Notes: generated by a model not told the origin, from the sequence alone. A stretch of 64,000 nucleotides of DNA from Takakia lepidozioides (GCA_030704615.1 CM060733.1:67208001-67272000); one strand, 5' to 3'; positions 6,257 to 51,440 are shown, counted from the stretch's first letter. Translations and numbers: made by a program.

Positions 6257-6307
6257 CTAGTTATCATTCCTGACGTGACGTGGCGCTCACACGTCGGCCG
6301 TCACGTC
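6257..6307 (-). other. Element terminus: CTAG plus GC-rich hairpin (resembles a Helitron 3' end)
   Basis: CTAG at 6257-6260 lies 11 nt from the stem GACGTGACG (6272-6280) / CGTCACGTC (6299-6307). The same structure occurs at 51377-51427. Confidence 0.7.
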
Positions 6308-6464
6308 CGACATGCGTCACGTCACGTCGAATCCGGACGTTTACCCATGTAATTTTTTTTACATTTGACTTTTACGATTTACTTCTACATTTTGTAATAA
6401 CATGGCAGCCACGGTGTAAAATAGACGTGGCCAATTATTAATATTTATTAATTCTTTTAAAAAA

Positions 6465-7070
6465 ATGTGTCCGCCTATATTGGCAGTTGCATATAATTTA
6501 ATATTTTTATTAAATTAAGCGACCGCCTATATTGGCGGTCGGTTGAAGTTTATTATGTTTTAAATGAAAGGACCGCCCAGATTGGCGGTCGCTCGCACTT
6601 TATTATATTATTATTATTACATCTCTGATATATTATGTAAAAATACAGTGACCGCCATGTGGTGGTCGCTATATATATTTTTTAAATTTAGCGACTGCCA
6701 TTTAGCAGCGGTCGCTTATTTTTATTTTTATTCTTAAATAAAGCGACTGCCGTTTGGCGGTCGCTTCTTCAGTTAATTTTTGAAAAATGCAGCGACCGCC
6801 ATTTGGAGGCGGTCGCTCGATTTGATTTTGATTCTTAAATTAAGCGACCGCCGTTTGGCGGTCGCTTACTTAATGTATTTTTTTAAATGAAGCGACCGCC
6901 ATTTAGCGGCGGTCGCTTATTTATATTTTGATTCTTGAATTAAGCGATTGCCAGTAGGCGGTCGCTTATTTAATATATTTAAAAAAACAACAGCGACTGC
7001 CATGTGGCGGTCGCTCTTTTTGTTTTTATAAATATAACGACCGTCATGCGGCGGTCGCGTGTTTTTTTTT
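6465..7070. repeat. Array of palindromic GCGACCGCC-n-GGCGGTCGC units separated by AT-rich spacers
   Basis: About 11 hairpin units at roughly 55-60 bp spacing, e.g. AGCGACCGCCGTTTGGCGGTCGCT at 6843. Confidence 0.9.
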
Positions 7071-7642
7071 TCTTAGAAATCCAGGACCCGCCGTGTGGCA
7101 TTTTGTTTTTAATTTTTTAATCATGAAGCGGCGCCTGGCCAAGCCATGTGGCGAGGTGCCACGGGTCAGGAAAAATGAAACAAATGGGATGGGGGGAGGT
7201 GATTTTGAACCCTTGACCTCTCCCATGTGGGTGCGCGTGGCGAGGCGCCACTGGCCTGTCGCGCCTTTTCAAGCATAATGCCATTTTGGGAGGGGGGGGG
7301 CTGGTGGGCGCCTATATAGACCATTCCCCCCTCCTTTTCTGATCACTTTTGCCCCTCTCGTGGTGCGGTTCCTTGGCATCCTGTAGTCCTTTCGGACTTC
7401 GTTGCTTGGCACTGCCAACGGGAGGTGCAAAGGTGATTATTTGGGAAGGGGGGGGGGGGGGGGTTGTCGGTTTTCTATTGGTCAGTTTAACACACTTGGT
7501 CACGGTTCAATCATCGTATCACCATTTTGCCGTTTTCGGATCTCCAACGGCCTGCTTTTTTTTCAGAAAACAGGCATCATCCACACGCATTCATTGCCGT
7601 TTTCTGAGGTTTTGGACCTTGTAGTGGGCAAAGGTTTATACA

Positions 7643-9016
7643 ATGTCGGGGGTTATGAATTCAAGTTCTGGGGTGGGATCGTCTGGGGATCGGAGGAAAA
7701 GAAAACGTGCCCACGAGTGGGATAGCCAGGTCAACAAGCCAGACTACCCGGGACCGGATGCCTTGGATAGGGTGAAAGAAGTGGTAGTGGATTTTTTCAA
7801 GGGTAGGGACATGACGAGGCTGGAGAGTGCTTATGTCAGGACAAGCCAAAGTTCAATCGGTGGATCCAAAGCAGGGCGAAATACGCCACGTGGAATTTGA
7901 GACAACTAATGAAGACATGGAAGGGTAGAGCAACCGAAGGTCGAGTGCCCTCCGCCGAAGCTGAGTTAATGCGGCGTGTTGAGTATTGGGCTTGCTCGGC
8001 AAGTCAGAATTCACATCGCCGGACTAGGGTTGTCCCTTGGAAGGCGGGGTCATCGGGCGGGGGAGACACAACTGGTCTTTATTACCTGAACTCTATTGCG
8101 AAGGTGGTAGAGATTGGCCCTTACAAAGAAGGAGGGTATGCTAAGGTCCGTCAGTGTAGGATTGTTGGCGATTCGAGAATACCGGAGCATTGGGAGCTAG
8201 CGGGAAAAACCCAAGTCCAAAAATCCAGAAAAGACGTTGAGACAACATAACGACGAGTGTTTGGCAGTGAAGTTCCAGCATCCGGATGTTATCTCATATT
8301 TTGCTGTGAATGCACGTGAGGTAGAGGGTTACACTCGCTGGTGGAATGAGGGGACAATACGCGACATGATGAACCTTGACAGAAAATGGGGCAACGATTC
8401 GGACATCAGGGTGATTTTGGAACAAAGGGGAACGGAAGCAGAGTTCCAGGAACGCGATCGCTTGCTTCATTTTCGGAAAGTGCAAAGTAAACTTGCATGG
8501 GCACTGGTGTGCATCATGGATGTTGTCCACAAGAACAGTGTCATGCACAACGACTTGTCCCCCGACAACATCTTGTTGCATTTTCCAGATGGCACCGAGG
8601 AGATCAAGATTGGGGTGTGTGATTGGGGCTTAGCCACCCCATTGGGCATACGCAAAGCCTCGTCATACCAGTTTGAAAACCAAGACAAGCTGGACCGGGA
8701 ACTCGCGAAAAGATGGTAGGTGGAAAAAGATATTGCATCGGTTTTCGATGCGAATGCCCCCCCCCCCCCCAAGGACATGACGTCGGAGGCCTTTGCCATT
8801 GGGAAGATAGCGGTACGAATAAATGGCGGTGCTCATTATGATCAAAGTATGTTCGAGGACCAATTTACGGGAGGTTGTTGGCATTCAATGCTACAAAGGT
8901 TGTACGACAACAACAAGAATGAGATAGTCACATTAGCCCATGTAGTACTTCGGTTCATGGCAAGCCGTTCAATTGGCCTGAGCCGAAAGATGTATATAAG
9001 ACGGAGTAGACCATAG
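7643..9016 (+). pseudogene. Protein kinase-like gene (non-RD, HND catalytic loop), copy A, frameshifted
   Basis: Across ORFs 7643, 7897, 8237 and 8720: EGGYAKV (Gly loop), ELAGKT (catalytic Lys), E..AVKFQHPDV, VMHNDLSPDNILLH, VCDWGLA, SEAFAIGKI. N-terminal RRKRKR. Two frameshifts and a TAG at 8717. TATA-like CCTATATAG at about 7310. Confidence 0.85.
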
Positions 9017-9087
9017 TCTCGTAGATATGAGATTTGTGGCGGTACAATGGTTCTTTTATGAAGACATAACTCAATTTTGATCGTACA

Positions 9088-10309: not shown

Positions 10310-11697
10310 GAAACCCCATTTATTCAATGGGCGATTGAATGGTTACCCATCCAAATGATTTTCGTTTGTTCTCAATCTTTGCCACTATGTTCAACATACC
10401 ATGTATCAGGTCCCGGACTAATATGAGATCAATTGAAATTCATTCAAAGGCTCAACGGATGGTTGACCATCGAAATGATTTTGGTTCGCTTTGAGACTTG
10501 GCCACTATGTTCAATGTGCCATATAAGAGGCCCCAGAGTAATATGAGATCAATCGAAATTCGTTCAATGGGCCAACGGATGGTTGCCCATCCAAATGATT
10601 TTCGTTCGTTTTGAGACTTGGCCAATGTGTTCAATGTACCCTCTGATACGTCCCAGTGTAATACGAGATCAATCAAAATTCGTTCGATGGGCCAATGAGG
10701 CTTTCACTTGTCATCTGGTTTTTGTTCAATGCGGAAAAAAAATCCTGCAATGCGTGCACGGCTATTGCACCCATTGAACGGATGTGGTTGAAGCCCCTCT
10801 TTTGCCCCCATGTGCTTGAACATGTGTGTGACACATTTGCGGAGACACAACAGACGAATAGATCATTTGCCTCCCCATCGACGCGCTCACCCCTCAACCA
10901 TTCCAGAATTTAATTGAATTTAAATTAATTTTAAACCAATAAATAGGTTTGCACTGCCTTTCATTGGGGGTTTCTGGCACGTATCGATTTTGTTTTTGGC
11001 TCAATTTTGTTCTGCAGCTTCAAGCATCCCACCGCTACTCCTCTGCCAAATTTGGACCAATAAAAAATGCCCCCAAAAAAAAAGTGTTCTCTTCGCTCAC
11101 TATTGCAAAACTCTCTATAAAGAGTGCATCAAGTAAAACACAAATCAAGTATGGAGTGCAAAACAGGGAAGAAACTGTGGTTTTGGGTCCAAATGAATTA
11201 TGTTCGCTCCCAAATTTGGCATGCACGTTGCATATGGAGTCATTACACGCCCCATTCAAAAGCAGAATGAAAAAAAAATCGTGAGCACGCGAAACACAGT
11301 CCAACAGGTCCCAAAGTAATAGCAGATCCAACGGAATACATTCAACGGGTGAACGGATGGTTGCCCATCCAAATCATTTTTGTTTGCTTCCAAACTTTGC
11401 CAGTACGTTTGAGACACCTTCTCACAGATCCCGGACTAATATGAGATCAATCGAAATTCATTCGATGGCTCAACGGATGGTTGGCCATTGAAATGATTTT
11501 AGTTCGCTTTGAGACTTGGCCACTATGTTCAATGTACCATGTAAGAGGCCCCAGAGTAATATCAGATCAATCGAAATTTGTTCAATAGGCCAACGGATGG
11601 TTGCCCATCCAAATGATTTTCGTTCGCTTTGAGACTTGGCCAGTGTGTTCAATGTACCCTCTGATATGTCCCAGTGTAATATGAGATCAATCGAAAT
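10310..11697 (+). repeat. Satellite-like array: 120-bp monomers in triplets within a higher-order unit of about 1.0 kb (about 1.4 units)
   Basis: GAGATCAATCGAAATTC...AACGGATGGTTG.CCATC.AAATGATTTT recurs at about 10425, 10545, 10665, then 11443, 11563 and 11683. Confidence 0.9.
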
Positions 11698-14442
11698 TAT
11701 TTTGTGCTTTGAGAACTTTGTGGATATGTTCATAGAAAGATCATAGATTTTGTGAAATGATTATGAAATACGAAGGGACCAGACGAAAATTTGTTTGGAA
11801 GATGACCGTTCGTAACTCGTTATAACTTATTGGTTAACATCAATTTTCCTAGTTCTCCAGCTTTCGGAGTTCATTGCAAATACCCACACGTCATGACCAA
11901 ATATGACACCATTGTAAATTTGTTTGCAGGGTGAACTACTTCTTCCCCATCACACGAGTGTAAACGTAAAGAAAACGCTGCTCATGCAATTGAAATTGGC
12001 AGGTGCCGCACATGTGCATTGTGTATTAACAAAATTGGTGATATACAAAATTGGCGGAATGTCATCACTGTGTTTTCCAACAATATTCAAGGTACAATAA
12101 AAATGCACATTGTATATGTACTACGCTGCCAGTCATTAAAAGCCTAGTCGTCACTGTCCGAGGACAAGGAATTTGATGATGTGGCCTGATTTGCACTGCC
12201 AATTGCCAGAGCTTGCGATCGTGATCTCGTGGTCAATGAGGGCCCCAATGACATGTGATCAATTCTGGCTTGCATCCGCCTAATTCGCGGTGAAAGTTGA
12301 CTTTCTTATTCACTCTCACGGTGTGGCGGAGGTGGATCGAGAACAAGTGCACGGACTGCATGCAAATCGGCAACGAGGCCGTCCACATCCGGCAATAGAG
12401 CCCCCGAAACACGATGATAACGGTCTATCCATAGTCGCCTCAATTTCTCTACAACTGCCTTGATGGTACTTTTGAAACTTTCCAATTGCCTCTCGCGGGC
12501 CCTGTCCCTAATCATTGTGTCGTTTCGACAATAAACCGCCTCGTACGCCTCATTCATTCGGCGTTGACATATTATAGCATCTTCCAGTTCGGACAACAAC
12601 AAATGTCTCCCAATCAGTTGTCTGTCATACAATTGGTTCTCCTCCGGCACCCATGTGGGAGCCGGATAAACCTGGACCTTCTTTGACTCCAATGCCCTCC
12701 CAGATTGCGGCAAAACTGCTCTCTCTCCCACCAATCTCAAATGTTTCCCGTACGTATGGTTATCTCCCAGTCAGATGTGACCCAGAAATACTGGGGATCT
12801 TTGATGTATGCCGGGTTTCCGGCATGTATGCCATGCATCTCTCTGTCTGCATCCCATACTAAGTTCTTGCCCCAATGCACACAATTCAGAAATGTGAATA
12901 GTAGCCCATCCAATGGGAGGTTGTGTCGATTGTATTCAAAATCTATGGACATCCGTTCCTCCAAGCCCACTAGCTCATAGAAACGGCGATAGATTGGTGT
13001 ATGACATTCTGGACAAGCGCTCATCCGCAAGGCTTGCGGGATAAGACATGTGAGATGGAACATATGTCCACATGATCCAAGCACATGACATTCCTCTGGG
13101 CCGTATGGATTCCTACACATCGAACAAACTGTGTCATCTGATATCCATAACGGCAAAATGCCTCGTGGTATCTCCTCCCTCTGGGCCGGTTTGATATGAC
13201 TGGTCATCCTTGTTTTGGTGTCTCATTCTTCCTCTATCTCCAATTCCCAGTTTATGCTTCTGTTCGACCCCGAAATTCTGTACTCACATCGATCGAACAT
13301 ATAATCCACATCTGCCCAATTGGTATACCCGATGAACATACTAGATGCAATGTGGAGATCGTTATATCTTTGCATGTTGGCATAAATGCTATCCACGCTA
13401 CGGTTTGACATGCGTGCGACACGTTGCAAGCCTGACAGTGCCCGCTATACCCGTGCTTCTTTGGAGGCCAAATGGGTCGTCCATTGTACCCAATTCTCCC
13501 AATCGCCATTCAATGGGACCCATGCCCGAATCTCCAGCGTTTTGGACAAGCGCCATGCAGTTGTCATGACAATGTCCCGCTCCTTTGTAATGCGGTTGAC
13601 ATCTAAATATTGAGTTCATCTCGGATTGAATGGCGACCCTCGAGCATTCCCCGGTTTCCAGTACTAGTTTTTTTTCTTTCCTCCTTCTCTCATCCGCAAT
13701 TCGCTGTTCCTCAACCATGGTTTCATCGGCCACAGGGTCAAGGACGTCCGTAATTTCGTGAATGATGAGGTCAATACTGCGATCGGGCATCGCAAACTCC
13801 GCGTCCATGTCCACGACGTTTGTTCAATCCTCATTGTGGACAACAATGCCTTCATTGTTTGGAGGCATGTCTTGCAATCTAGCTTCCAACTCGGCTATGC
13901 GCAGTGTTTGCCAGTCTAGTCGGTCTTGATTCGCTGGTCTCTTTCCGCCAGTTGTTCCTGTAACGTTGCAGTCGGTTGTATTTTGAACGTGTCCGGAATG
14001 TACTCCAAACTGTATAGCAACCTTGCGTTCCTCCTACTAGCAGTTTGCCAATTCACTAGACGCAAGAGTATGACCTCCACGTACAATATGGCTGCCAAGG
14101 TGTACGGGATTTGGCCCTTTAAGAGAGGTTGACCCCACAATGTGCAATGCACCTCATTCGCCATATGCTGGAAATGCAAGTTCGTGCAAGACCTGGACTC
14201 TGCGTAATTGTTCCGGGTTTGCATGTCATGCATATCCAAAGGCCACAATTGATTGATGTGGTACTATTTCACAAATTTTTTGCATCTCCCCATCGGCCAT
14301 CTGAACTCTTCCGGAACATCCTCCCAGCCCTCTTCTGCTGGTATGCTAGGGTCACCATATACTTCCCAATTCAAGTCTTGCCTTGACCCTTTGATTTTCT
14401 TTAGGGGCGGTCCATGTTCATTATGGTCATCTCTTCCATGAC

Positions 14443-15152
14443 TGTCGCGCACCTCACTTCGGTAAGCTCCCCTTCAAGTCATAGTTACTCGCTTTGATGC
14501 GCGCGCCTGACTCCCAACCTGGCCGCCCGGGCCAACTTGGAGCTTCGGCTGCTCACCGGGACATAACGGTCCCCCTTCGCTTCCCTCTAAACCCTCCACC
14601 TATTTGGGACTAGGAGAATTCCCTTTGGTAGATGGCAGTCCGGAACAGCTCCCCACTCTTTGGTCGCTTTCCGGCTCGCTCGCTTACTCACTAGTTTTTG
14701 GTCACCAACGGGCTTGCACCGTTCTCGGGTTACTACTCCCTATATATACTTCTGTAGCTGTCCGCGGGGTCCAGCCATGCCATTTTATGGCGAACCACCA
14801 CGAAAACCCTCGACTCCCGGTGATGAGTCGCGGTGAGTCTTGGCCCACTCATCACAGCCCCTATGGACCGTGATGAGTCCCAAGACTCCCCACGACTCCC
14901 ACCACGAGGTCTCCGCCCCATGGTGAGTCCTATGCCACCCCCACTAAGTCCCAAGCTACCACCACCCCTTGTGGAGCCACCCCCACCGCAACCCGGTGTG
15001 CGGGGCTCCACCTAGTGAGCGCCTCCGCCTCCTTGAGTGCCTTGGGCACTCAAGGGTGCTTCAGCCCCCCATACCTATCGCTGCCTGCCCCCACCACAGG
15101 GGCAGCCCCTCATGTGTCCCGACCCCCTGCCCTCAAGGCAAAGGGCGCGACA
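14443..15152 (-). repeat. 3' LTR
   Basis: TGTCGCGCACC...GGGCGCGACA, near-identical to 20659-21376. Preceded on the minus strand by a purine-rich tract GGTAGGGGTGTG. Confidence 0.95.
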
Positions 15153-16059
15153 CACACACCCCTACCAACAGGGAGTCGATGTCCTCATCGACTTGTCCAT
15201 TTTGTAGAAACGAACATCCAAGTTGTGGCGTCCCACATCAAGGAGTTTGTTTCCGTACCATGGCGTCCCATGGCAAAGAACCAAACCCCACACTTGACTC
15301 TACTCTCCACTAGCTAGTTCGGCCGACTTCCTCCAAGTCCCGGCCAAGGGTGGAGCCTCTCCAGCTCCTCCCAGTGCACTCTTCTTGGCCTACTTCAAGG
15401 CCAAGGAACGATCCTCCCCGAGGATCGAATCGCCTTACTGCAACAACATTGCTTGCGATCGCTCATGATGCCGCTTTTGGCATCACCTTGAGCAAGGGTT
15501 CCCTGGAACCCTCTTTGACTAGGAAGATAACCTTGAACCAACCGTGCGCCCCAATCACTACAATTGGGTCCGCCTTGGAATGCTGGCCTGAGGTACGGGA
15601 ACACGCCGAAGCCGCACTACGACTTCGTCCCGAGGCTACACGATTATAGTACGTGAACGGAAGCACGTAGCTTCCGCGTTAGCCCGCACTACAAGGCAAC
15701 CCCCTCGGTAGCGCAGTTATAGTACGCGCACGCGCCAGGTGCGCACTAGCACGTGAACTCCCAAAGAAGGCGCAAGTTTCCTTGCCCCTTGGATGGGGGT
15801 CACCCGATTTCGGCACTACGCAAACACACGATTAACCCAATTTACCTCTCCACTTTTATAAGCTAGCATGCATTCTACACACTAGCCAACCATACCATGC
15901 ATCACCATTCCAAACAAAATAGGACGCACAACATTTGGAACCCATTTCCTTTATAACAAATTTTGTACAATACAAGTTTTTGCAATCGGATTCCTAAGCT
16001 AGCTAAGCCGGGCTAAGCATGCATTTCCTCCCCCACGCTCCAAGGTTGATGTCCCCATC

Positions 16060-20603: not shown

Positions 20604-20644
20604 GATGAGGCCAATCCCAAGGACGATCGCGTACTGAACTCTAA

Positions 20645-20656
20645 GCTCTGATACCA
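20645..20656 (-). promoter_or_regulatory. Primer binding site (initiator tRNA-Met)
   Basis: TGGTATCAGAGC on the minus strand, 2 nt from the 5' LTR. Confidence 0.92.
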
Positions 20657-20658
20657 AG

Positions 20659-21376
20659 TGTCGCGCACCTCACTTCGGTAAGCTCCCCTTCAAGTCATAG
20701 TTACTCGCTTTGATGCGCGCGCCTGACTCCCAACCTGGCCGCCCGGGCCAACTTGGAGCTTCGGCTGCTCACCGGGACATAACGGTCCCCCTTCCTTCCC
20801 TCTAAACCCTCCACCTATTTGGGACTAGAGAATTCCCTTTGGTAGATGGCAGTCCGGAACAGCTCCCCTCTTTGGTCGCTTTCCGGCTCGTTCGCTTACT
20901 CACTAGTTTTTGGTCACCAACGGGCTTGCACCGTTCTCGGGGTCTACTCCCTATATATACTTCTGTAGCTGTCCGCGGGGGTTTTACAACCAGCCATGCC
21001 ATTTTATGGCGAACCACCACGAAAACCCTCGACTCCCGGTGATGAGTCGCGGTGAGTCTTGGCCCACTCACACGGCCCCTATGGACCGTGATGAGTCCCA
21101 AGACTCCCCACGACTCCCACCACGAGGTCTCCGCCCCCATGGTGAGTCCTATGCCACCCCACTAAGTCCCGCTAAGCTACCACCACCCCTTGTGGAGCCA
21201 CCCCCACCGCAACCCGGTGTGCGGGGCTCCACCTAGTGAGCGCCTCCGCCTCCTTGAGTGCCTTGGGCACTCAAGGGTGCTTCAGCCCCCCATACCTATC
21301 GCTGCCGATGCCCCCACTACAGGGGCAGCCCCTCATGTGTCCCGACCCCCTGCCCTCAAGGCAAAGGGTCGCGACA
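20659..21376 (-). repeat. 5' LTR
   Basis: TGTCGCGCACC...GGTCGCGACA, flanked by the PBS and the TSD. Confidence 0.95.
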
Positions 21377-21984: not shown

Positions 21985-22025
21985 CGCAAACTTCAAGGTT
22001 GGATACCCACTCACTCCATATCTGA
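21985..22025 (-). pseudogene. Short protein disulfide isomerase/thioredoxin-like exon fragment
   Basis: RYGVSGYPTLKF follows an intron acceptor (TTTTTCAG) and is fused to unrelated sequence. Very short. Confidence 0.45.
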
Positions 22026-28837: not shown

Positions 28838-28857
28838 AAATGGAGACACGCCACATA

Positions 28858-40073: not shown

Positions 40074-42546
40074 ATGGCGGAGGAGGAAGACAGAGGAGGT
40101 CATCCCAGGGATGACGATAATGAACCTGGTTTTCCAAAAAAAACACCAAAAAGGGCCAGGCGCGAACTTCGTTGGGACATATACAATGACCCCAACATTC
40201 TTGCGGAACCAGGTTGGGAAGTTTGGAAGTTGGGGCAGCGGTGGTCACTTGGTGACTACAGGAAATTTGTGGACTGGTGTCACATAAATCGTTTGTGGCC
40301 CAAAGATAGGCATGATCCACAAACCAAACAAAATCAAGCTAGCTTGCATTCCTGCGCCAACCCACATTTCCGACACAGGGCAGAGGAGGTACATACAACA
40401 TTGTGGGGTCAACCGCTCGTCAACAACAAGGTCCCGTATTTATTTGCGGTCATGTTGTAGACAGAGTTGATTTTATTGCAACCAGTGGATTGGCAAACTG
40501 CCACTGCGAGACAGTATACTAGACTATACATGTTCTCTGATATCCCAGACTTGTATATACGTCAAGGGCAGGACATCATACAGTTGGATGGAAACGATGA
40601 GGTGGAAGAAGGAGGAAAGGCAGACCAACCTCCAGATTACACGCCACAGGTCTCCGCAGCCGGGCCTTCAACGTCTGAGGTGAAGGGGGGCGAGGTACGC
40701 TCTCCGTTGGAGGAACAGTTGGCCGCACATGAACATCACATCAAGGACCTGTAGGACATTGTTCATTTGCAACGGTAGCAAATAGCAAAGTTGCTGGAAA
40801 GAATGGGGTTGGGGACTCTCGACAGCGTACGCGGTGTGCTTTAAGACCCGAGGCCAATCACCAACGAGCAAGACATATTGGCGCGTTTGAATATGCCATT
40901 AATGGACATTGATCGCATCATCGACGGGGTTGACTCAATCGAGCATGGGAATGAAGTACAAACGCCTGAACTAGACCCGGCGAGGGTTGAGGAAGAAAGA
41001 CTTGCGGCGGAGAGGGCAAGAAAAGGGAAGGACCCCATAGTGGAAACTGGGGAATGTTTTGCCGTGCAAATTACATCGGGGCCCAAGAACAAGAATTAGA
41101 GCAGCTAATGGGGGAACGCGAGTAAGCTAGGGCTGCATATCGGTACTCAAATGTCATGCAAATCCGATTGTGGCCATGGTTGAAGGGGAATTGGCGGAAT
41201 TGGGTGACATAGACGGGTCATCTAGCATCGCGGGAAACACGGATAGAAGAAGCGTTGTCCTCCCTCCAACGTGCAGCATGTTTGTCAAATCGAAGCGTAG
41301 ATAACATCTATGCTAATTTGCAAAGGCACACCACTGTGCGTGATATATTCACGTCGAAGTACACTGGATTCACCACATGGGGTGATGTGGATGTCATGTT
41401 TGAGCACTGTGTGCATACAATTTCTGATACCAATAAGAGCATAAACTGGGATTTGGAAGTAGAGGAGGAGTGGGACAGCAAGCCGAGGATGTCATCCTAC
41501 ATTCATGACGATAAACGGACGTGGATACCACGGAGCAATCCAGCGTCATGGGTAACAGATGGTACGGTGTACACAATGTGCCTAAACCCTTAGGGAGGCT
41601 ATATGCTTGGTTCATGTGGCCATTTGTTCCATCCCGCATGTCTCATATCGGCAGCCATGCGAGCCAGCCAATGCCTAACTACCGTGGACCAATCCATCGA
41701 CGTTTCTACGAGTTATTTGGGTTGCAAGACAATATGCCCACGAGATACGAGTACAACTGATACAACATGCCATTGGATATATCGCCTTACGGTTTTTTAA
41801 ATTGGCAGCACTGGGGGGAGACAATGACATGAGATGCTCCAAGAGAGATGCACGCCTTGGATGCGAAGACGTTAACTAGGGTTAAAGATCCAGTGACCTT
41901 TTGAGTGACATCCAACTGGGAAATAACCGTGCGTGCTAGAGGCATACGGGACCCAGTCCAAAGGGAGCTTTTTTGCCGGATCTTGGGAGGGCATTGGAGC
42001 TGTACTAGACAAAGATTCTTCCGACTGCTTGAGGATTTGTGGGTGCCAACGGAAAATGACCCATACAATCACGAACCGATTGGGAGAGACCTATTTCTGA
42101 GGGAGTTGGAGGCCGCTAGCATCCGTTGGGAGGATATGAATGAGACGTACTAGGTGCCTCGTCGGGATGAAGGGTCATTTCTTCTAGAGTTGCGCAGAGA
42201 CCCCCAATAGGAGGAGGTGTTGGACAATTTCAAGGCTGCCATCACGAGTGTTGTAAAGTATTGGCAGAATACATGGCATGACCAAGTTGCCCTTATTCCA
42301 AGGGTGTTCTTGTCACTTCCAAACATATCGGATTTAATTGAAAAATTGCATGAAGCCGTAGCAAGAGCGACACACCCGGCTCTGGCAAATGTGGAAGAGA
42401 GTCAGCACTCGCCTAGAACGATACGCATGATGGCAAGGGTGGACCACACAACACCGGGTCCCTCTTTGACCACTCGAGCTCTCCGTACTGGTGGAGGCAC
42501 GTCCTCTACACCCGGAGCATCTTCATCAACATCTGGAGATGACTAG
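40074..42546 (+). pseudogene. RING-H2 finger gene, copy B (many premature stops)
   Basis: MAEEEDRGGHPRDDD...EVHTTLWGQPL...VDWQTA...VETGEC...GSCGHLFHPAC...RRFYELFGL...TSNWEITVR...SSTSGDD* aligns with copy A throughout. TATA-like CTTATAAG at about 39705. Confidence 0.85.
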
Positions 42547-42599: not shown

Positions 42600-45500
42600 A
42601 TGTGCAACCCATTGTATAGTCTACGTAATTTTTGGAAATATGAGGTTCATCCTTTGAACCATTTTTGAATGACCTCATACTTGTTCGGTACCTGTTTGAC
42701 GGCATGTACAATATACTGGCAAAGTTTCAAAACAATCAAAAAATTGCTGAATGAAGATACCATTGGTTCACCCATTGCAATATTTTAAATCGAACTCATA
42801 CTTGTCCGGTACCTTTAAGAGGGCATGTACAATGCAATGGCAAAGTTTGAAAGCATTCAGAAATCGGCACATCAAGTAACCATTGGTTTCTCCTGTAAAC
42901 CATTTTTTATTGTTCTCATACTTGTCTGGTCCATGTAAGAGGCATGTAGAACATACTGGCAAAATTTCAAATCATTCAAATTTTTTTTTATCAAGGAACC
43001 TTTGGTTTATCCTTTTCACCATTAACGATTAATCACAAATAAATGAACAGACGAATAAATCATTTGCCTCCAAATAATTTTGGTTCGCTTTGAGTCTTGG
43101 CCAGTATATTCAATGTACCATGGAAGAGGCCCCAGAGTAATATGAGATCAATCGAAATTCGTTCAATGGGCCAACGGATGGTTGCCCATCCAAATGATTT
43201 TCGTTCGCTTTGAGACTTGGCCAGTGTGTACAATGTACCCTCTAATAGGTTCCAGTGTAATATGAGATCAATCGAAATTTGTTCGATGGGCCGATGAGGC
43301 GTTCACTTGTCATCTGGTTTTTGTTCATTGCGAAAAAGAAATCCTGCAATGCGTGCACGGCTATTGCACCCATTGAACGGATGTGGTTGAAGTCCCTCTT
43401 TTTCCCGCATGTGCTTGAACATGTGTGCGACACATGTGCGGAGACACAACAGACAAATAAATCATTTGCCTCCCCATCGACACCAAGCCATTCCATAATG
43501 TAATTGAATTTAAATTAATTTTAAGCCAATAAATAGGTTTGCACTGCCTTTCATTGGGGGTTTCTGGCACGTATCAATTTTGTTTTTGACTGGTTTTGCA
43601 GCTTCGAGCATCCCACTGCTACTCCCCCGCCAAAATTTGGACCAATTAAAATAAAAAAAATGTTCTCTTCGCTCACTATTGCAGAACTCTCTATGAAGAA
43701 TGTATGAAGTAGAGCGCAAATCAAGTTTGGAGTATAAAACGAGCAAGAAACTGTGGTTTTGGGTCCAAATAAATTTTGATTGCTCCCAAATTTGGCATGC
43801 ACGTTGCATATGGAGTCATTACACGTCCCATTCAAAAATAGAATGAAAAAAAAAACATGAGCACGCGAAACGCAGTCCAACAGGTCCCAAAGTAATAGGA
43901 GATCCAACAGAATACATTCATTGGATGAGTGGATGGTTGCCCATCCAAATCATTTTTGTTTGCTTCCAAACTTTGCCAGTACGTTCGAGACACCTTCTCA
44001 CAGGTCCCGGATTAATATCACATCAATCGAAATTCATTCGATGGCTCAACGGATGGCTGGTCATTGAAATGATTTTGGTTCGCTCTGAGACTTGGCCACT
44101 AAGTTCAATGTGCCATGTAAGAGGTCCCAGAGTAATATGAGATCAATCGAAATTCGTTCAGTAGGCCAACGGATGGTTGCCCATCCAAATGATTTTCATT
44201 CGCTTTGAAACTTGGCCAGTGTGTTCAATGTACCCTCTGATACGTCCCAGTGTAATACGAGATCAATCAAAATTTGTTCGATTGTCCAATGAGGCGTTCA
44301 CTTGTCATCTGGTTTTTGTTAATGCGATAAAGAAATCATGCAATGCGTGCACGGCTATTGCACCCATTGAATGGATGTGGTTGAAGCCCCTCTTTTGCCC
44401 CCATGTGCTGGAACATGTGTAGAGACACATTAGACGAATAAATCATTTGCCTCCCCATCGACGCGTTCACCCCTCAAGCTATTCCACAATTTAATTTAAT
44501 TTAATTTAATTTTAAGCCAATAAATAGGTTTGCACTGCCTTTCATTGGGGATTTCTGGCACGTATGGATTTTTTTTTTGGCTCAATTTTGTTTTGCGGCT
44601 TCAAGCATCCCACCACTACTCCCCCGCCAAAATTTGGACCAATCAAAAATGCCCCCAAAAAAAAATGTTCTCTTCGCTCACTATTGCAAAACTCTCTATG
44701 AAGAGTGCATGAAATTGAATAAAAATCAAGTTTGGAGTACTAAACAGGGAAGAAACCATGGTTTTGGGTCCAAATGAATTATGTTTGCTCCCAAATTTGG
44801 CACGCATGTTGCATATGGCTACATTACACGCCCCATTAAAAAACGGAATGAAAATAAAATCGTGAGCACACGAAACACAGTCCAACAGGTCCTAAAGCAA
44901 TAGCAGATCGAGCGGAATACATTCAACGGGTGAACGGATGGTTGCCCATCCAAATCATTTTTGTTTGCTTCCAAACTTTGCCAGTACGTTTAAGACACCT
45001 TCTCACAGGTCCCAGACTAATATCAGATCAATCGAAATTCATTCGATGGCTCAACGGATGGTTGGCCATCGAAATGATTTTGGTTCGCTTTAAGACTTGG
45101 CCACTGTGTTCAATGTGCCATGTAAGAGGCCCCAGAGTAATATGAGATCAATCGAAATTTGTTCAATGGGCCAACGGATGGTTGCCCATCCAAATGATTT
45201 TCGTTCGCTTTGAAACTTGGTCAGTGTCTTCAATGTATCCTCTGATACCTCCCAGTGTAATACGAGATCAATCAAAATTTGCTCGATTGTCCAATGAGGC
45301 GTTCATTTGTCATCTGGTTTTTGTTCAATGCGAAAAAGAAATCCTGCAATGCGTGCACAGCTATTGCACCCATTGAACGGATGTGGTTGAAGCCCCTCTT
45401 TTGCCCGCATGTGCTTGAACATGTGTGCGACACATGTGTGGAGACACATTAGACGAATAAATCATTTGCCTCCCCATCGACACGTTCACCCCTCAAGCTA

Positions 45501-48500
45501 TTCCACAATTTAATTGAATTTTAATTTTAATCCAATAAATAGGTTTGCACTGTCTTTCATTGGGGGTTTCTGGCACGTATCGATTTTGTTTTTGACTGGT
45601 TTTGCAGCTTCAAGCATCCCACTGCTACTCCCCTGCCAAAATTTGGACCAATAAAAAATGCCCCAAACAAAAAGTGTTCTCTTCGCTCACTATTGCAAAA
45701 CTTTCTATAAAGCATGCATGAAGTTGAACACAAATCAAGTTTGGAGTGCAAAACGGGCAAGAAACTGTGGTTTTGGGTCCAAATGAATTTTGATCGCTCC
45801 CAAATTTGGCACGCACGCTGCATATGGAGTCATTACACGCCCCATTCAAAAACGGAATGAAAAAAAAAACATTAGCACGCGAAACGCAGTCCAACAGAAT
45901 ACATTCAATGGGTGAGCGGATGGTTGCCCATCCAAATCATTTTTGTTTGCTTCCAAACTTTGTCAATACGTTCGAGACACCCTCTCACAGGTCCCGGACT
46001 AATATCAGATCAATCAAAATTCATTCGATGGCTCAACGGATGGTTGGCCATCGAAATGATTTTGGTTCGCTTTGACACTTGGCCAGTATGTTCAATGTAC
46101 CATGGAAGAGGCCCCAGAGTAATATGAGATCAATCGAAATTCGTTCAATGGGCCGACGGATGGTTGCCCATCCAAATGATTTTCGTTCGCTTTCAGACTT
46201 GGTCAGTGTGTTCAATGTACCCTCTGATAAGTCCCAGTGTAATACGAGATCAATCGAAATTCGTTCAATGGGCCAATGAGGCGTTCAGTTGTCATTTGGT
46301 TTTTGTTCATTGCGAAAAAAAATTCCTGCAATGCGTGCACGACTATTGCACCCATTGAACGGATGTGGTTGAAGCCCCTCTTTTGCCCGCATGTACTTGA
46401 ACATGTGTGCGACACATGTGCGGAGACACAACAGACGAATAAATCATTTGCCTCCCCATCGACACCAAGCCATTCCATAATGTAATTGAATTTAAATTAA
46501 TTTTCAGCCAATAAATAGGTTTGCACTGCCTTTCATTGGGGGTTTCTGGCATGTATCGATTTTGTTTTTGGCTCAATTTTGTTTTGCGGCTTCAAGCACC
46601 CACTGCTACTCCCCCACCAAAATTTGGACCAATAAAAAATGCCCAAAAAAAAAAAAGTTCTCTTCGTTCATTATTGCAGAACTCTCTATGAAGTAGAGCA
46701 CAAATCAAGTTTGGAGTGCAAATGGGCAAGAAATTGATCGCTCCCAAATTTTCCATGCACGTTGTATATGGAGTCATTACACGCCCCATTCAAAAATGAA
46801 ATGAAAAAAAAAACATGAGCACGCGAAACGCAGTCCAACAGGTCCCAAAGTAATAGGAGATCCAACAGAATACATTCAATGGGTGAACGGATGGTTGCCC
46901 ATCCAAATCATTTTTGTTTGCTTCCAAACTTTTGCCAGTACATTCGAGACACCCTCTCACAGGTCCTGTACTAATATCAGATCAATCGAAATTCATTCGA
47001 TGGCTCAACGGATGGTTGGCCATCGAAATGATTTTGGTTCGCTTTGGGACTTGGCCAGTATGTTCAATGTACCATGGAAGAGGCCCCACAGTAATATGAG
47101 ATTAACCGAAATTCGTTCAATGGGCCGACGGATGGTTGCCCATCCAAATGATTTTCGTTCACTTTGAGACTTGGCCAGTGTGTTCAATGTACCCTCTGAT
47201 AGGTCCCAGTGTAATATGAGATCAATCGTTAACGATTAATCATGAATCATCCAACAGGGGAACTGTTGGTTCACCCTTTGAACCATTTAACATTGACATT
47301 ATACTTGTCTAGTAACTTGAAGAGGGCATGTACAAGACACTCGCAAAGTTTCAAATGAATCCAAAATCATTTGGCAGGGGAATTGGTTCATCCATAGCCA
47401 ATTTCAGGGGCTGAAATTGCCATTTATGGGGCTCGAATTGCCAATTTCAGGGGCTGGACTTGCAATTTGAGGGGCGGGAATTGCCATTTCAGGGGCTAGA
47501 AGTGCAATTTGAGGGGTTGGAATTAAATTTCAGGGGCTTCAATTGCAATTTGAGGGGTTGGAATTGACAATTTCAAGGGCTCAAATTACAATTTGAGGGG
47601 CGGCCAGGGTTGGTCATTTTAGGAACTGACATTACCAATTTTAAGGGCTTGAATTGCATTTTGAATTGTAATTCAAGGGTTACAATGGGCCATTGGGGGG
47701 CTAGAATTACCAACGCAATGACATCCAAAACAATATAAAATCATTTGATAGTAGAATGATTGGTTCACCCTTTCAACCATTTTTTATTCACGTCATACTT
47801 GTCCGGTACTTGAAGGAGGGCATGTGGCTGACACTTGCAAAACTTCAAAGCAATGTAAAATCATTTGATAGGGGAACAATTGGTTCACCCTTTCAACCAT
47901 ATTTTATTGACCTCATACTTGTCCAGTACCTTTAAAATGGCATGTGAAAGACACTTGCAAAGCTTTAAAGCACTCCAAAATCATTTGATATGTTCATGAT
48001 TGATTCACCCTTTCAACCATTTTAGATTGACTTGAAACTTGTGAAAGACCTGTAAGAGGGCATGTACAAGACACTTGCAAAGTTTCAAATCAATTTAAAA
48101 TCATTTGGTAAGGGGACGATTGGTTCACCCTTTAAACCATTTTAGATTGATGTCATACTTCTCAAAGACGTGTAAGAGGGCATGTAGAAGACACTTGCAA
48201 AGTTTTGGAGCAATAAATTATCATTTCATCGGGGAAGTTTCCGTTCACCCTTTCATCCAATTTTGAATTGAACTGGATTTTTACTAAATAAAATGATTTA
48301 GAGGGCATAGGATTGTGGGGCGCAATGAGTGTGGGGCGCAATGATTTTGTTTTTGGCTTGATTTTGTTCTGTGAGTTGAACCCTAACACCACCACATCCT
48401 TGCCAAAAAATGTACCAAAGAAAAATGTTTGGAAAAAAACGTTCATCCTTTGCTCTATGCTCACTATTGTAGAACTATCTATGAAGAGTGCATGAAGTTG

Positions 48501-49000
48501 AAAATAACTTCACCTTGGAATGCAAATGAGGGAATAAAATGTGTTTTGGATGCAGACGATGTCTGTTCATGGTGATATTTTGCATGCAACTCTTCATGTT
48601 GTTATCAAGCATATGACTTCAGAATGGAATTAAAAACAATTCATGTGCAGGCGAAAGGTTGTTTCTCTTTATGAATTTGAATAACCCATTCAAACAACTT
48701 TGTTGAAGTTCAACTTTGGTCCATATGTGCTTAAGTACATACAAATCACGTACACAAAGTTGCAAGCAGAAAAATAATCACTTGCCCCCCGAACGACTCG
48801 TTAAACCTTTCAACCAATTTTCAATCATGAATCATTTAATAGGGGAACTATTGGTTCACCCTTAGAACCATTTTAGATTGACCTCATACTTATCCGGTAA
48901 CTTAAAGAGGGCATGTACAAGACACTCCCAAAGTTTCAAATCAATCTAAAATCATTTGGCAGGGGAACGATTGGTTCACCCATTGACCCGGTGTACACTG
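42600..49000. repeat. Composite satellite: diverged inverted 120-bp monomers flanking a homogeneous 1-kb higher-order array (about 43036-47228, about 4 units)
   Basis: Higher-order units start at about 43910, 44915, 45895 and 46865 and closely match 10310-11697. The flanking units TTGGTTCACCCTTT..AACCATTTT..ATTGACCTCATACTTG are diverged reverse complements of the same monomer. Confidence 0.9.
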
Positions 49001-49172
49001 TCATTCTTCAAGATTCGTGGGTGTGGTGCTTGATTATCCCATATGATGGACCCAGGTGCCATGGCCAAGTAACAAACCATTAAAACATTATGGTACGAGA
49101 CAAACACAATTGAAAACAACATTTATTCAAACATGATGTACAGTCAGAGGTCTACAAGTTTTTATCCATCAT

Positions 49173-50662
49173 CTAGCAATTTTTGGGCTCAGGCCAATTG
49201 AATAGCCCCGTCATGAAACGCTTCACAATATTTTCTAGTTTGTACCGCAACTCTACTGTGTCTACACACAAGTTTTCCAGAGCGGAACCAAAACAGGTTC
49301 CAGTAGACATATCGTTAAACAGGCTTGCATCGAACGTGTTACCCCCATTTATTGCTTGGGCTATCTTCCCAATTGCAAAGGTCTCTGATGGCATGGTTAG
49401 AGGGGGCCTACGAGGTGTGTCAACTGACTGGTTGTTGGCTACATTATGAACAATTGCAATTTCAGGTGCAATCCACCATCTATGTGCGAGAGTCTTTATC
49501 ATCTTGTCTCTGCTCTCGAAAATGTACAACGTGGTTTTTGGGTCATCCGTCCTGGAGACCATCCCCCAATTGCATACCCCGATGTACACAGCTTCAGACC
49601 CTTGTGGAAAATGCAACAAGATGTTGTCGGGGGACATGTCGTTGTGCAAGAGGTGGTGATTATGGACGTTGAGCATGATATGCAAAGTAGTACCCCTGCC
49701 AATTGGGTGCGATTCTGTCGGAATCGAACCAGTCGGTTAACCTCCTGTATTTCCTGCTCCGTCCCCCGTCGTTCCATTAACTCCATGTTATCCCGATCAT
49801 TCCCCCATTTCTTGTCAATACTCAACCATGATCGTATGGTCCTCCCATTCCACCAATGTGTGTAACCTTCATTTCGACGTGGATGCAACGCAAAATACTT
49901 TATGATGCCAAAATGATGGAACTTTATAGCCAACGCCTCATTGTTATGTTGGACTTTGGCAAGCTCAGCATTTGTTTCCCTGGGCGTTTTTCCTGCTAGC
50001 TCCCAAGATGTAGGAATGAATTGATCCCCAACAATTCTAACCCTCCGAATTGTACCATACCCTCCCTGTTTGGGCGCGTCGAGTTGTTGTACCTATGCGT
50101 TTGTGGATATGTATCTCACGTTCAATGTCGCATCCGCGAACAAGGACCCTGCCTTCCATGGGAGTGGTTTTGTACGTCGTTTGGCGTGGGCCTTTGCCAT
50201 GTCAGACCACCAAACCACAAGCACAAACAACTCCTCCTCCGAAGTTGACATGCGACCTTCAGCTACAGGTGTTCTCGTAACAAACTTGTCCATGGTTTGC
50301 CTCAGATTCCATGTGGCATCATGGGCCCGATCCTCCATCCATTTCGTGAACTGGAACTTCGCCCTGTCCTCCTCTCATTCATCCCCGGCCAAAGCCTCCC
50401 TCATTCTCATCTCCATATTGTGCTGGAATCTAAGGAACCCCTCATTCCCATGTCGGACATACAAAAGATTCAAACGCATTATGTCATTGTCCTTCAAATA
50501 ATCCAGCACTACTTGCTTCACCACCTTCGCGGCCTCTGCGCTTGGATAGTTTTTTTTGTTGACATGACTATTCCGTTCATGTGCATGTTTACGCTTCCTA
50601 CCTTTACGCCCACTTCCCGAGAAACCCCCTGACACTGCGTTCGAAGCAACGTTTCCGGACAT
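49173..50662 (-). pseudogene. Protein kinase-like gene, copy B, frameshifted
   Basis: MSG...RKRKHAHERNSHVNK, PWKAGS, WELAGKT, EGYTHWWNG, LLHNDMSPDNILLHFP, GVCNWGM (D replaced by N), WWIAPEI, SETFAIGKI. Confidence 0.85.
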
Positions 50663-51019
50663 GATGAAGGTACTCTGCGGAATAGACGCGGCTTCGTAAC
50701 GGAAAACTAAACCCAGACTATTGATAACCTTATATACTAGCAGACCAATTTCCTCACCCTCTATTGGTATAGTACCCAAAGCAAACTCTCCCGCAGTCCC
50801 AGGAAAAAAAGGCAAAAACTCCTCCCCCACACAGATCCACTCCCCCCCCCCCCACGCTCAGGCTTGGCCACCGAAGTTCAAACTCCAAGAAGCCCCAGAA
50901 CCGCACTCACAGAGAGGGAAAAAAGTGGATTGGGTATGAGGGGTAGGCCCTTATATACTGCCTCGAGAGGCTTGGCGCGCGACCATCTCTGTTGCCCATT
51001 CATGCCTCGCCACGTGTCC

Positions 51020-51428
51020 AGGGAGCGGTCGCACCTAATAACAAAAAAGAAAAAGTCTGCGACCACCACCGGCTGGTGGTCGCACCCATTTAAAAAATAA
51101 TTAAAAATGTACGACCATCCCTTGCTGGTGGTCGCACCTATTTTTTTTTTTTTTAAAATTGTCCGACCAACCTTTGCCGACGGTCGCATGACTGACAATA
51201 TAAATCATCATATATGACTTTTACAGATAATTAATGAAGTCCACGCAATGAGGCCACATCGGTTGCCACGTCGGTTCTCATAGTAAATAGTCAATAGTAA
51301 AGTAAAAAAATAAACATATTTATGTACAGTAACGTCGGTTTAGGACGTGACGTAACGCACGTCCATCGCTGACGTCGGACGTGACGCTGATGCGTCAACG
51401 CCACGTCACGTCCAAATTTGCAACTAGG
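51020..51428 (+). other. Copy B subterminal palindromic repeats and hairpin+CTAG terminus
   Basis: GCGACCACC..GGTGGTCGC units at 51060-51190. Stem GGACGTGACG (51377-86) / CGTCACGTCC (51404-13), then 10 nt, then CTAG at 51424-27. Confidence 0.8.
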
Positions 51429-51440
51429 TGTGAAACTTAC

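Follow-up and report, generated by a model that had tools for sequence, protein, structure and literature searches.

A stretch of 64,000 nucleotides of the Takakia lepidozioides genome (the window) carries, twice and in opposite orientations, a protein kinase gene together with a RING-H2 gene, and this raises the question of what kind of mobile element would keep such a pair and what the element would gain from it. The original prediction, which was made from the sequence of the window, read one repeated architecture, and we found the same in both copies, here called A and B: a hairpin terminus, a palindrome array, a TATA box, an intronless kinase gene, 120-bp repeats and a convergent RING-H2 gene, arranged as two inverted copies (Table 1). 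Our explanation as a whole, which we consider probable, is that these are decayed hAT copies carrying kinase and RING genes, which would be co-activated through the palindromes and whose products would act on the host.

Table 1. Features of copies A and B, in coordinates of the window
Feature	Position	Strand	Basis or remark
Copy A, kinase-side terminus, CCTAGTT + long ACGT-rich hairpin	6256..6340	+	start of A-B homology, sequence reading
Copy A, palindrome array, arms GCGACCGCC / GGCGGTCGC, ~50-bp period	6519..7060	.	motif count, TRF
Copy A, TATA box of kinase gene	7313..7318	+	read directly
Copy A, kinase pseudogene, intronless	7643..9013	+	ORF pieces, Pfam Pkinase
Copy A, intergenic repeat, 120-bp triplets around 610-bp core	10322..11698	.	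TRF
Copy A, RING-H2 pseudogene, main part	12147..14441	-	several frameshifts and stops
Nested Ty3/gypsy LTR retrotransposon, foreign to the element	14443..21376	-	splits copy A RING gene
Copy A, RING gene start (ATG ~21406) and 5' leader/promoter remnant	21382..21615	-	
Copy B, array 1, arms GCGACCACC / GGTGGTCGC, upstream of transposase	34860..35110	.	
Copy B, TATA downstream of array 1	35210-35216		
Copy B, hAT transposase relic, zinc-finger-like N-terminus + DUF659 catalytic core	35529..37048	+	Pfam
Copy B, array 2, palindrome of array 1, upstream of RING gene	38386..39650	.	
Copy B, TATA-like box of RING gene	39706-39712		
Copy B, RING-H2 pseudogene, intronless	40074..42543	+	several frameshifts and stops
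Copy B, native 120-bp repeats, left block	42644..43023	.	TRF; family of 47726-48986
Copy B, repeat array, ~990-bp period, A-type sequence	43063..47228	.	
Copy B, native 120-bp repeats, right blocks	47726..48986	.	orthologous to those of copy A
Copy B, kinase pseudogene	49176..50662	-	
Copy B, kinase promoter	50951..51190	-	TATA 50951-50957 + array 3
Copy B, array 3, palindrome of arrays 1 and 2	51059-51190		
Copy B, kinase-side terminus, CCTAGTT + hairpin	51345..51428	-	start of A-B homology, sequence reading

None of the four accessory genes in the window is intact, each being a pseudogene that has several frameshifts and in-frame stops; the kinase has at least two frameshifts and one in-frame stop in copy A, and at least two in-frame stops and one frameshift in copy B. 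The Pfam Pkinase model matched the copy A piece at 8201-8716 with 33.8 bits (cut-off 31.7) and scored below the cut-off elsewhere, and the copy A kinase can be aligned to intact relatives of about 500 aa. The catalytic motifs, already described as conserved at the first reading, are kept across the kinase family (HND, the catalytic-loop DN and DWG), with Ser in place of the usual catalytic-loop Lys. When the predicted model of one relative (L005) was searched with Foldseek, more than 500 kinase chains were matched at E<=1e-3, and the model resembles TK/TKL kinases (E about 1e-6). The product would be a protein kinase of eukaryotic type but atypical, about 500 aa long and basic at its N-terminus, whose activity is predicted. 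Separately, we observed a weak Pfam match to poxvirus kinases (E 0.0018).

The RING gene is convergent with the kinase gene in both copies. Its reading frame in copy A rejoins across the LTR insertion, starting at about 21406 and resuming at 14441, and the gene aligns to the full-length relatives P0010 and P0160. A C3H2C3 RING-H2 signature, carried by the RING genes of both copies, lies within 12740-13222 in copy A; the Pfam RING models fall just short of cut-off in the window and exceed it in P0160 (zf-RING_2, 34.8 bits). A model of residues 725-790 of P0010 superposes on the RING-H2 domains of RNF165, RNF38 and RMR1, and the rmsd between the RING region and RING-H2 E3 domains is 1.5-2 Å. The protein appears to be about 800-1150 aa long and to combine a RING-H2 finger with a long coiled coil and a Cys/His-rich N-domain that is conserved; by its C3H2C3 signature and RING fold, it is a putative RING-H2 E3 ubiquitin ligase.

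Between copies A and B, amino-acid identity is 47% over 388 codons for the kinase and 50% over 493 codons for the RING gene, in agreement with the earlier estimate that roughly half of the residues match. Taken by codon position (1/2/3), the kinase copies are identical at 0.60/0.68/0.47 of sites and the RING copies at 0.65/0.68/0.45, with position 3 far more diverged in both. The dN/dS ratio between the copies, named at the outset as a check, was 0.26 for the kinase and 0.16 for the RING gene, values that are biased downward by computation on segments picked by protein similarity, and it indicates, at about 0.2 between the two lineages, that both genes were held under purifying selection. The proposal of an old family, and not a recent duplication, is borne out by coding DNA that is 64-68% identical, by saturated synonymous sites and by unrelated flanks. 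The homology begins exactly at 6256 and 51428, with about 63% identity over 169 bp, and the flanks outside these positions are unrelated between the copies; such sharp stops and unrelated flanks argue for transposition and against segmental duplication. Host kinase and E3 ligase genes that underwent an old inverted segmental duplication and were later pseudogenised would account for two inverted copies within 45 kb and for the failure to find paired transposon ends in the window, but besides the sharp boundaries and the unrelated flanks, this explanation is opposed by private palindromes that differ between A and B, by kinase/RING relatives that adjoin hAT transposases in other genomes and by the rarity of the protein family (22 representatives at E<=1e-10 among 1.84 billion), and we consider it very unlikely. 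The window appears to contain one decayed member from each of two diverged subfamilies that belong to the same DNA transposon lineage.

The extents first given for the two copies had to be revised. Of the span 6257-21615 assigned to copy A, 45% is an unrelated Ty3/gypsy retrotransposon, which appears to have split the copy at a later date; its LTRs (14443-15152 and 20659-21376) are 96.4% identical, have TG..CA ends and a 5-bp TSD (ATGAC), and Gag, zinc knuckle, integrase and Tf2 SH3 domains lie inside it. Copy B, whose start had been placed at about 38730, reaches left at least to 34860, and all three genes, transposase included, are still visible from about 34.8 kb to 51428. The kinase and RING genes are present in copy A, from 6256, for which the window shows no transposase; this copy may be a deletion derivative, or else it may have been cut short near 21.6-21.8 kb. 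Its sequence at 21519-21614 matches copy B at 39917-39819, and the A-B homology ends within the segment that contains the RING gene start.

Both termini have CCTAGTT and then, 15-17 nt inward, a long ACGT-rich inverted repeat, and the DNA fold of the hairpin is -21.4 kcal/mol (z -2.8) in copy A and -24.4 kcal/mol (z -3.9) in copy B. A hairpin followed by CTAG about 15 nt further, seen at both termini, would suit a Helitron-like rolling-circle element whose 3' end lies on the strand opposite the kinase. However, A and B alike have G instead of T after CTAG, copy B encloses a hAT transposase that stands behind the element's own array, and the linked RepHel gene contemplated in the original prediction did not appear, as no Rep/helicase domain was detected in the ORFs scanned between 5 and 56 kb; a Helitron is, in our judgement, highly improbable. 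The far ends of copies A and B were not found in the window: no matching inverted terminus or 8-bp target duplication pairs with 51428, and the terminal inverted repeat search gave no two ends in the window that can be paired as those of a single element. Copy A has just one exact 8-mer repeat, CCCAAGCC (6249-6256 and 21843-21850), and the adjoining right end is without the family terminal motif; for copy B, whose left end was not found, the flank at 51429-51436 has no repeat in any plausible place. CTAGG and a 10-mer that is present only three times in the window recur in a third end-like sequence, at 33300-33346.

The class of the element can be read from copy B. Pfam DUF659 matched 36228-36509 with 70.3 bits (cut-off 34.7) and 35754-36224 weakly, and over 198 aa the relic shares 49.5% identity with the L072 transposase, an intact hAT protein with both DUF659 and Dimer_Tnp_hAT. 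Downstream of 37048, copy B is decayed or truncated, and the hAT C-terminal dimerisation domain (PF05699) was not matched there in the window; L071 and L072, the closest intact relatives, have this domain, as does P0008, and the transposase homologues P0006-P0008 carry DUF659 or Dimer_Tnp_hAT. Pfam zf-BED did not match on 35481-35726, where only a CxxC...H pattern is seen by eye; because some hAT transposases have no Pfam-detectable BED finger, the missing match does not exclude hAT membership.

The palindromes join this relic to the accessory genes. Exact A-type arms occur 12 times in the copy A array (6519-7058), for which TRF gave periods of 52/100, and only once elsewhere in the window, the chance expectation for exact arms being about 0.24 per 9-mer per strand in the window. 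Exact B-type arms (n=26) are found in three clusters only, at 34871-35110 (transposase), 38436-39595 (RING) and 51059-51135 (kinase). Array 1 is an inverted match to the RING-gene array, and the latter is interrupted near 38900-39140, where about 200 bp have been inserted. A palindrome that is shared by all three B genes and is private to B argues that the three belong to one element, and each gene appears to have its own promoter, composed of an array of the subfamily-specific palindrome and then a TATA box. The label "unclassified" was accordingly dropped, as the copy B pair is contiguous with a hAT transposase relic behind B's private array.

The original prediction had also suggested a search of other genomes, and the kinase-RING pair recurs there. 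The impression that the pair goes with no known transposase did not hold, since elsewhere relatives of the RING gene, and sometimes of the kinase, adjoin hAT transposases, some intact and some decayed: at L072 an intact hAT transposase is convergent with a RING gene of 1154 aa that is intact as well, transposase and RING are found at L070 and L071, all three genes at L045 and L057, and kinase and RING at L001, L008, L033, L042 and others. Motif arrays precede each gene in L008, L070, L042/L045 and L057, with a motif that differs per lineage, and gene order and orientation vary between lineages. Because the pair and a hAT transposase occur together in B and in relatives, we assign the copies to a multi-gene hAT lineage and not to a new class of element; this lineage of the hAT superfamily appears to carry a transposase and two long-conserved intronless accessory genes. 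The kinase + RING payload is unusual for the hAT class, and we found no published description of such a lineage in the literature.

The same loci bear on the view that the pair, its arrays and the 120-bp repeats form a self-contained cargo module moving between transposon superfamilies, the hAT relic beside copy B being one carrier and copy A the module travelling without a carrier. Copy A without a transposase in the window and the variable gene order would fit such a module. Among kinase-bearing metagenome loci of at least 10 kb, a RING gene was not in reach in 23 of 33 and a hAT transposase in 31 of 33, and in one assembly the kinase adjoins NIF-phosphatase-like and 2OG-oxygenase-like genes; these many loci and other neighbours indicate that the kinase is not exclusively tied to hAT elements, but the absences weigh little because the contigs are short and decayed. 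Moreover, B's private palindrome also precedes B's transposase, RING and hAT transposase occur together in four independent loci, and all three genes in two. We therefore regard a mobile cargo module as unlikely and retain the multi-gene hAT lineage.

The 120-bp satellite noticed at first is real in both copies, such repeats lying between the kinase and RING genes. B 47726-48986 matches A 10338-11696 inverted with 65-70% identity, whereas B 43063-47228 is 88-90% identical to A 10322-11698 in +/+ orientation, versus 65% for the genes. As the 88-90% block has the same chromosomal orientation in A and B, it runs against the direction of the genes in one copy; the array in B appears to be inverted relative to the B genes and to have been acquired secondarily. 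The true B orthologues of the copy A repeats are the 120-bp repeats at 42644-43023 and 47726-48986.

How the three genes would serve the element can be proposed only tentatively. An element-encoded DNA-binding protein might read the private palindromes and co-activate all genes of cognate copies, the candidate reader being the transposase N-terminus first and the RING protein N-domain second. Transposases are able to activate cognate copies sequence-specifically (bioRxiv 10.64898/2026.08.24.746577), and the targets bound by VANC proteins are non-coding repeats private to the transposons that encode them (PMC5735166). Kinase and E3-like protein would then target host proteins, with chromatin or silencing factors the most likely ones, or else the transposase, to the benefit of the element. 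An anti-silencing or host-manipulating role of the two is plausible; for a toxin-antidote or drive reading, nothing found speaks for such a pair in particular. The full scheme, a private three-gene hAT regulon in which a palindrome-reading factor would activate transposase, kinase and RING E3 and the two enzymes would disable host silencing or chromatin factors, is possible but doubtful. If true, it would be an enzymatic counter-defence kit inside a eukaryotic cut-and-paste transposon; to our knowledge, kinase + E3 counter-defence kits are known from large DNA viruses and not from such transposons.

Among known systems, hAT elements (Ac/Ds, Tam3, Tag1 and the DUF659-type of plants) are the closest, with the DUF659 core in the relic, the dimerisation domain in intact relatives, the cut-and-paste type, short terminal sequences and repeated subterminal motifs. 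A classical hAT element measures 2.5-5 kb and has the transposase as its sole gene, whereas the present lineage reaches about 16 kb or more and has two further genes under selection, each behind its own motif array and TATA box.

Large DNA viruses pair a kinase with a RING E3 against host repression, e.g. herpesvirus ICP0 with US3/UL13. The likeness is that of a selfish nuclear DNA element with its own kinase and RING E3 and nuclear-localisation-like basic stretches, but homology is limited to generic folds and the comparison is an analogy only. An origin from a large DNA virus or virus-like element that once integrated here is, we think, extremely improbable: intronless genes, a kinase and a RING protein, repeated promoter motifs, compact TATA promoters and the aforementioned poxvirus-kinase match are in its favour, but the scanned ORFs contain no capsid, polymerase, packaging or other viral hallmark, and the linkage runs to a hAT transposase.

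VANDAL elements (Mutator-like) with VANC are likewise plant DNA transposons with accessory genes beside the transposase (PMC5735166, PMC10398659), and their short non-coding motif arrays differ by subfamily, as if co-evolving with an element-encoded binding protein. They belong to another superfamily, however, with no sequence relation expected, and VANC is a DNA-binding protein, neither kinase nor RING; of a VANC-like system, only the cis side is visible here, as subfamily-specific arrays before each gene. ToxhAT and the fungal cargo transposons resemble the present copies as large DNA transposons, some of them hAT, with non-transposase genes, and the TET/JBP dioxygenases in fungal DNA transposons have been read as a counter-measure to host methylation (bioRxiv 10.1101/2024.03.04.583430; PMC12730594). 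The payload there is an effector (ToxhAT) or a dioxygenase (TET/JBP carriers) instead of a kinase and a RING protein, and the carriers are fungal, whereas the present elements come from T. lepidozioides; ToxhAT has recently captured cargo of benefit to its host, in contrast to the old, co-evolving gene set described here.

The two copies of the family share one architecture, much as the original prediction had described it, because homology between them starts exactly at 6256 in copy A and at 51428 in copy B, and both ends carry CCTAGTT and, 15–17 nt inward, a long ACGT-rich inverted repeat, from which the order inward is palindrome array, TATA box and kinase gene. These hairpin-forming repeats fold better than shuffled sequences (z of -2.8 and -3.9). 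In a self-comparison of the window, the kinase regions (7625-9013 on the plus strand, 50857-49176 on the minus strand) and the RING regions (14473-12147, minus; 40074-42543, plus) were found to be related. The relationship is one at the protein level and is weak in DNA; when the broken genes were searched piece by piece, BLASTP gave E-values as low as 1e-31, with 64–68% identity in the DNA. When the flanks outside the two copies were compared with each other, no similarity and no common flanking gene were found. The view that the copies are Helitrons fails, because a G follows CTAG and no RepHel was found in the ORFs scanned. Near its TATA box or within its leader, every accessory gene of the two copies has runs of 10–14 G (or C on the opposite strand), which may be a conserved promoter feature.

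Copy B carries a third gene. The original prediction had left the family unclassified, holding that neither gene looked like a known transposase, and had started copy B at about 38730; the array of the RING gene begins already at about 38386, and the third gene, the relic of a hAT transposase, lies to its left. In this relic, the Pfam model DUF659 scores 70.3 bits on 36228-36509, and the preceding piece matches the beginning of this model. DUF659 is the catalytic core in one clade of plant hAT transposases. The homologues found in databases bear DUF659 or the hAT dimerisation domain, and the relic shows 49.5% identity over 198 residues to an intact ORF that has both domains and lies on L072, a contig from another assembly; the dimerisation part of the relic itself is absent within the window. 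The left end of copy B is expected a short distance before 34860, which would give an element of about 16.6 kb. An ORF in this left flank (34110-34652) has no homologue and no match in the loci compared from other assemblies. An insert some 200 bp long (38900-39140) splits the palindrome array of the RING gene; it is tRNA-related or SINE-like by eye, and ARAGORN found no tRNA in it.

The transposase relic belongs to the same element as the kinase and RING genes of copy B, because palindromes with arms specific to this copy precede all three. A compensated change distinguishes the arms of the two copies, GCGACCGCC being paired with GGCGGTCGC in copy A (A-type) and GCGACCACC with GGTGGTCGC in copy B (B-type). 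Exact B-type arms occur 26 times and form three clusters only, upstream of the transposase, the RING gene and the kinase gene, and exact A-type arms are confined to the region upstream of the kinase gene of copy A; the chance expectation is about 0.24 occurrences per 9-mer per strand. What emerges is an element of hAT lineage in which each of three genes has its own promoter and all have a private cis-motif in common. Host genes copied by segmental duplication fail as an explanation of such private palindromes, of the linkage to a transposase and of the sharp boundaries of the copies.

Positions of individual features of copies A and B in the window
Feature	Position	Basis or remark
Ty3/gypsy LTR retrotransposon nested in the RING gene of copy A	14443-21376	LTRs, target-site duplication, domains
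Palindrome array before the transposase, copy B	34860-35110	
TATA box of the transposase gene, copy B	35210-35216	
Third gene of copy B	35529-37048	ORF series
G/C runs	7290-7300, 7440-7460, 21600-21612, 39692-39704, 50830-50850	

Frameshifts and in-frame stops interrupt both genes of copy A. The extent first assigned to this copy has to be corrected, because it includes a separate Ty3/gypsy retrotransposon, which has two LTRs of 0.72 kb each (96.4% identical, TG..CA), a flanking 5-bp duplication, ATGAC, and an interior with gag, zinc-knuckle and integrase domains. Once this insertion is taken out, the two parts of the RING gene join in one frame, with the start codon at about 21406, and homology to copy B stops at about 21615, within the leader of the gene. 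We found neither a second palindrome array nor a transposase in copy A. An exact 8-mer, CCCAAGCC, abuts its left end (6249-6256) and occurs again at 21843-21850, and the pair may be the mark of a short two-gene deletion derivative; the right end is not fixed at the second occurrence, because the adjoining sequence is without the terminal motif of the family and aligns to nothing in copy B. A further copy of the LTR of the nested retrotransposon, with 200 bp of its internal sequence, is present at 62094-63031 (93% identity). A 2-kb inverted repeat immediately left of copy A (758-2776 / 3650-5679; 95% identity) contains tandem repeats of 192 bp and may represent the arms of another transposon.

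Far ends of the copies were sought as AACTAG(G) ends and as flanking 8-mer repeats, and the known ends were compared by BLAST and Smith-Waterman with 21.4–38.8 kb, and neither search gave a convincing partner; a 10-bp match of the flank of copy B at 3448 was dismissed because it sits in unrelated sequence. In the region 21850-34870, no Pfam match was obtained for 91 ORFs, nor for 12 others tested. A third terminus-like sequence at 33180-33346 ends in CTAGG and has the 10-mer GCCACGTCAC 30 nt inside; this 10-mer occurs three times in the window, every time close to a CCTAG end. Left of this third end there are repeated ACCACTGTGACACGTCAG units and GGACA..TGTCC palindromes, and no target duplication matching the end was found. 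It may be the missing far end of copy A, or it may terminate another related element. To the right of copy B, ORF pieces at 51429-52475 on the minus strand (..DATFGTN.., ..IVDDADAEINAI..) resemble a Mutator-type transposase by eye, a reading that we do not claim because there is no Pfam match; if it is right, copy B was inserted into another DNA transposon.

Concerning selection on the accessory genes, codon alignments of in-frame segments between the two copies covered 388 codons of the kinase gene, with identities of 0.60, 0.68 and 0.47 at positions 1, 2 and 3 and a dN/dS of 0.26, and 493 codons of the RING gene, with identities of 0.65, 0.68 and 0.45 and a dN/dS of 0.16. Because the segments were chosen by protein similarity, these ratios are somewhat lowered; the excess of change at third positions is still clear. 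Synonymous sites are saturated in both genes, which agrees, together with the low DNA identity, with the strongly diverged, old family that had been proposed, and the ratios bear out its proposed maintenance of both genes under selection. Judging from the codon pattern, the genes were functional while the lineages of copies A and B diverged, and the decay of each copy followed its insertion.

The kinase is very divergent; the Pfam model Pkinase matches one piece of copy A with 33.8 bits and copy B with 25 bits. Proteins of this family have a basic N-terminus and a helical N-domain of about 120 aa, followed by a kinase domain in which GG.Y..R.V replaces the glycine loop, with a conserved AxK motif, the catalytic loop HNDLSPDN, where Ser takes the place of the usual Lys, a substitution that may affect activity, and DWG; HND, DN and DWG are kept in the copies of the window. 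The AlphaFold model of a relative at locus L005 (mean pLDDT 72) matched LIMK1, JAK2 and MET, kinases of TK/TKL type, at Foldseek E-values of about 1e-6, and the nearest solved kinase by sequence has an E-value of 3e-4. Both RING genes carry a C3H2C3 RING-H2 signature. In the model of a homologous RING protein, P0010 (mean pLDDT 57), an N-domain rich in conserved Cys and His (residues 40–155, pLDDT >90) is followed by a coiled coil some 400 residues long, then by the RING-H2 finger and a helical C-terminal part, and structural relatives (RNF165, RNF38, RMR1, gp78) were obtained for the finger alone. For the fold of the N-domain, Foldseek gave RING matches only and VIA-align coiled-coil matches only; a profile search against PDB sequences returned coiled-coil noise, and a feature search of the ESM Atlas gave no usable match. 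A predicted complex between the RING N-domain and the kinase of locus L008 scored 0.00, which counts neither for nor against an interaction. A viral origin of the kinase-RING pair is an unlikely rival explanation, against which stands that we saw no viral hallmark in the ORFs scanned.

The spacer between the two genes contains 120-bp units in both copies (TRF). The repeats flanking in copy B (42644-43023, 47726-48986) match those of copy A inverted, as expected, at 65–70% identity, which is the divergence level of the genes, and the 120-bp repeat is therefore an old part of the spacer. Blocks at 10322-11698 (A) and 43063-47228 (B) are 88–90% identical and run in the same chromosomal direction; in one of the copies, the block must therefore be reversed with respect to the genes. 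It is also much younger than they are. The block in copy B is A-type, has a period of about 990 bp and lies within the copy's own 120-bp repeats, and copy B gained it later, perhaps by conversion from the nearby copy A. The two blocks suggest conversion or exchange between these two neighbouring copies long after their divergence.

Relatives were found in other assemblies. A search with a kinase piece yielded proteins from a single ENA assembly and from JGI data. A pattern scan of metagenome contigs yielded 65 loci, most of them belonging to a small number of related sample series, and several of the loci contain intact kinase ORFs of 485–560 aa. A scan of 1.84 billion representatives with the RING piece, without a profile, gave 22 proteins at E<=1e-10, the full-length members being 787–1154 aa. 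At L072 the intact transposase ORF is convergent with an intact RING gene of 1154 aa; transposase and RING occur together in L070 and L071, all three genes in L045 and L057 (L057 in the order of copy B), and kinase and RING in L001, L008, L033, L042 and others. Among kinase loci of at least 10 kb, 10 of 33 have the RING gene and 2 of 33 all three genes, counts that are rough because sister assemblies contribute some loci more than once and most of the loci have decayed badly. The pairing of kinase and RING claimed earlier thus recurs in other genomes, with gene order and orientation differing among lineages. About 15 copies of GCCGTCCGAT lie upstream of both genes of L008, with a TATA box after each array, and motifs of their own form clusters before every gene in L070, L042/L045 and L057. 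The main rival explanation, that kinase and RING genes are a cargo module hopping between carriers, is in accord with the loose linkage across metagenome loci and with a copy A that has no transposase; it is opposed by the palindrome common to the genes of copy B, transposase included, and by the repeated linkage of RING gene and transposase. In ENA ERZ25073694 (L001, L002, L004), the kinase adjoins ORFs for NIF (CTD-phosphatase-like) and 2OG-FeII_Oxy_6 (Pfam), which may indicate that the accessory genes of that lineage are more numerous or of other kinds. Full-length intact RING proteins (P0026, P0045 and relatives) are encoded on Logan contigs of 2.7–4.5 kb from several public runs; with this approximately transcript-like length, the contigs may be assembled transcripts and thus come from living, expressed relatives.

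For the single hAT-lineage element, a mechanism in two steps can be proposed. The arrays would be putative binding sites of an element-encoded activator that acts on all genes of cognate copies together, with the transposase N-terminus as the obvious candidate; we consider this first step to stand at about even chances. Sequence-specific activation of cognate copies has been reported for transposases of other superfamilies (bioRxiv 10.64898/2026.08.24.746577), and the private repeats of VANDAL elements are bound by VANC (PMC5735166). Secondly, the kinase and the E3-like protein would modify host proteins or the transposase in favour of expression or transposition; an anti-silencing role of these predicted enzymes is, in our estimation, possible but less likely than not. 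Nothing points to a toxin-antidote pair, which had also been suggested.

Copies A and B are dead, and their value lies in the lineage, which spans several genomes and whose genes are all connected to one and the same private cis-motif. hAT elements are textbook single-gene transposons; if selection has maintained both a kinase and an E3-ligase-like protein in one of their lineages, this would mean that cut-and-paste transposons are able to build virus-like toolkits for host manipulation. Because the palindromes are defined, the genes intronless and intact relatives publicly available, self-recognition and escape from silencing become testable in early-diverging land plants. For annotation, kinase and RING genes of this kind in these genomes should be regarded as transposon genes and not as host signalling genes. 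Full-text searches of the literature yielded no account of a hAT element that carries a kinase and a RING gene; the nearest published cases are ToxhAT and the fungal transposons with TET/JBP genes.
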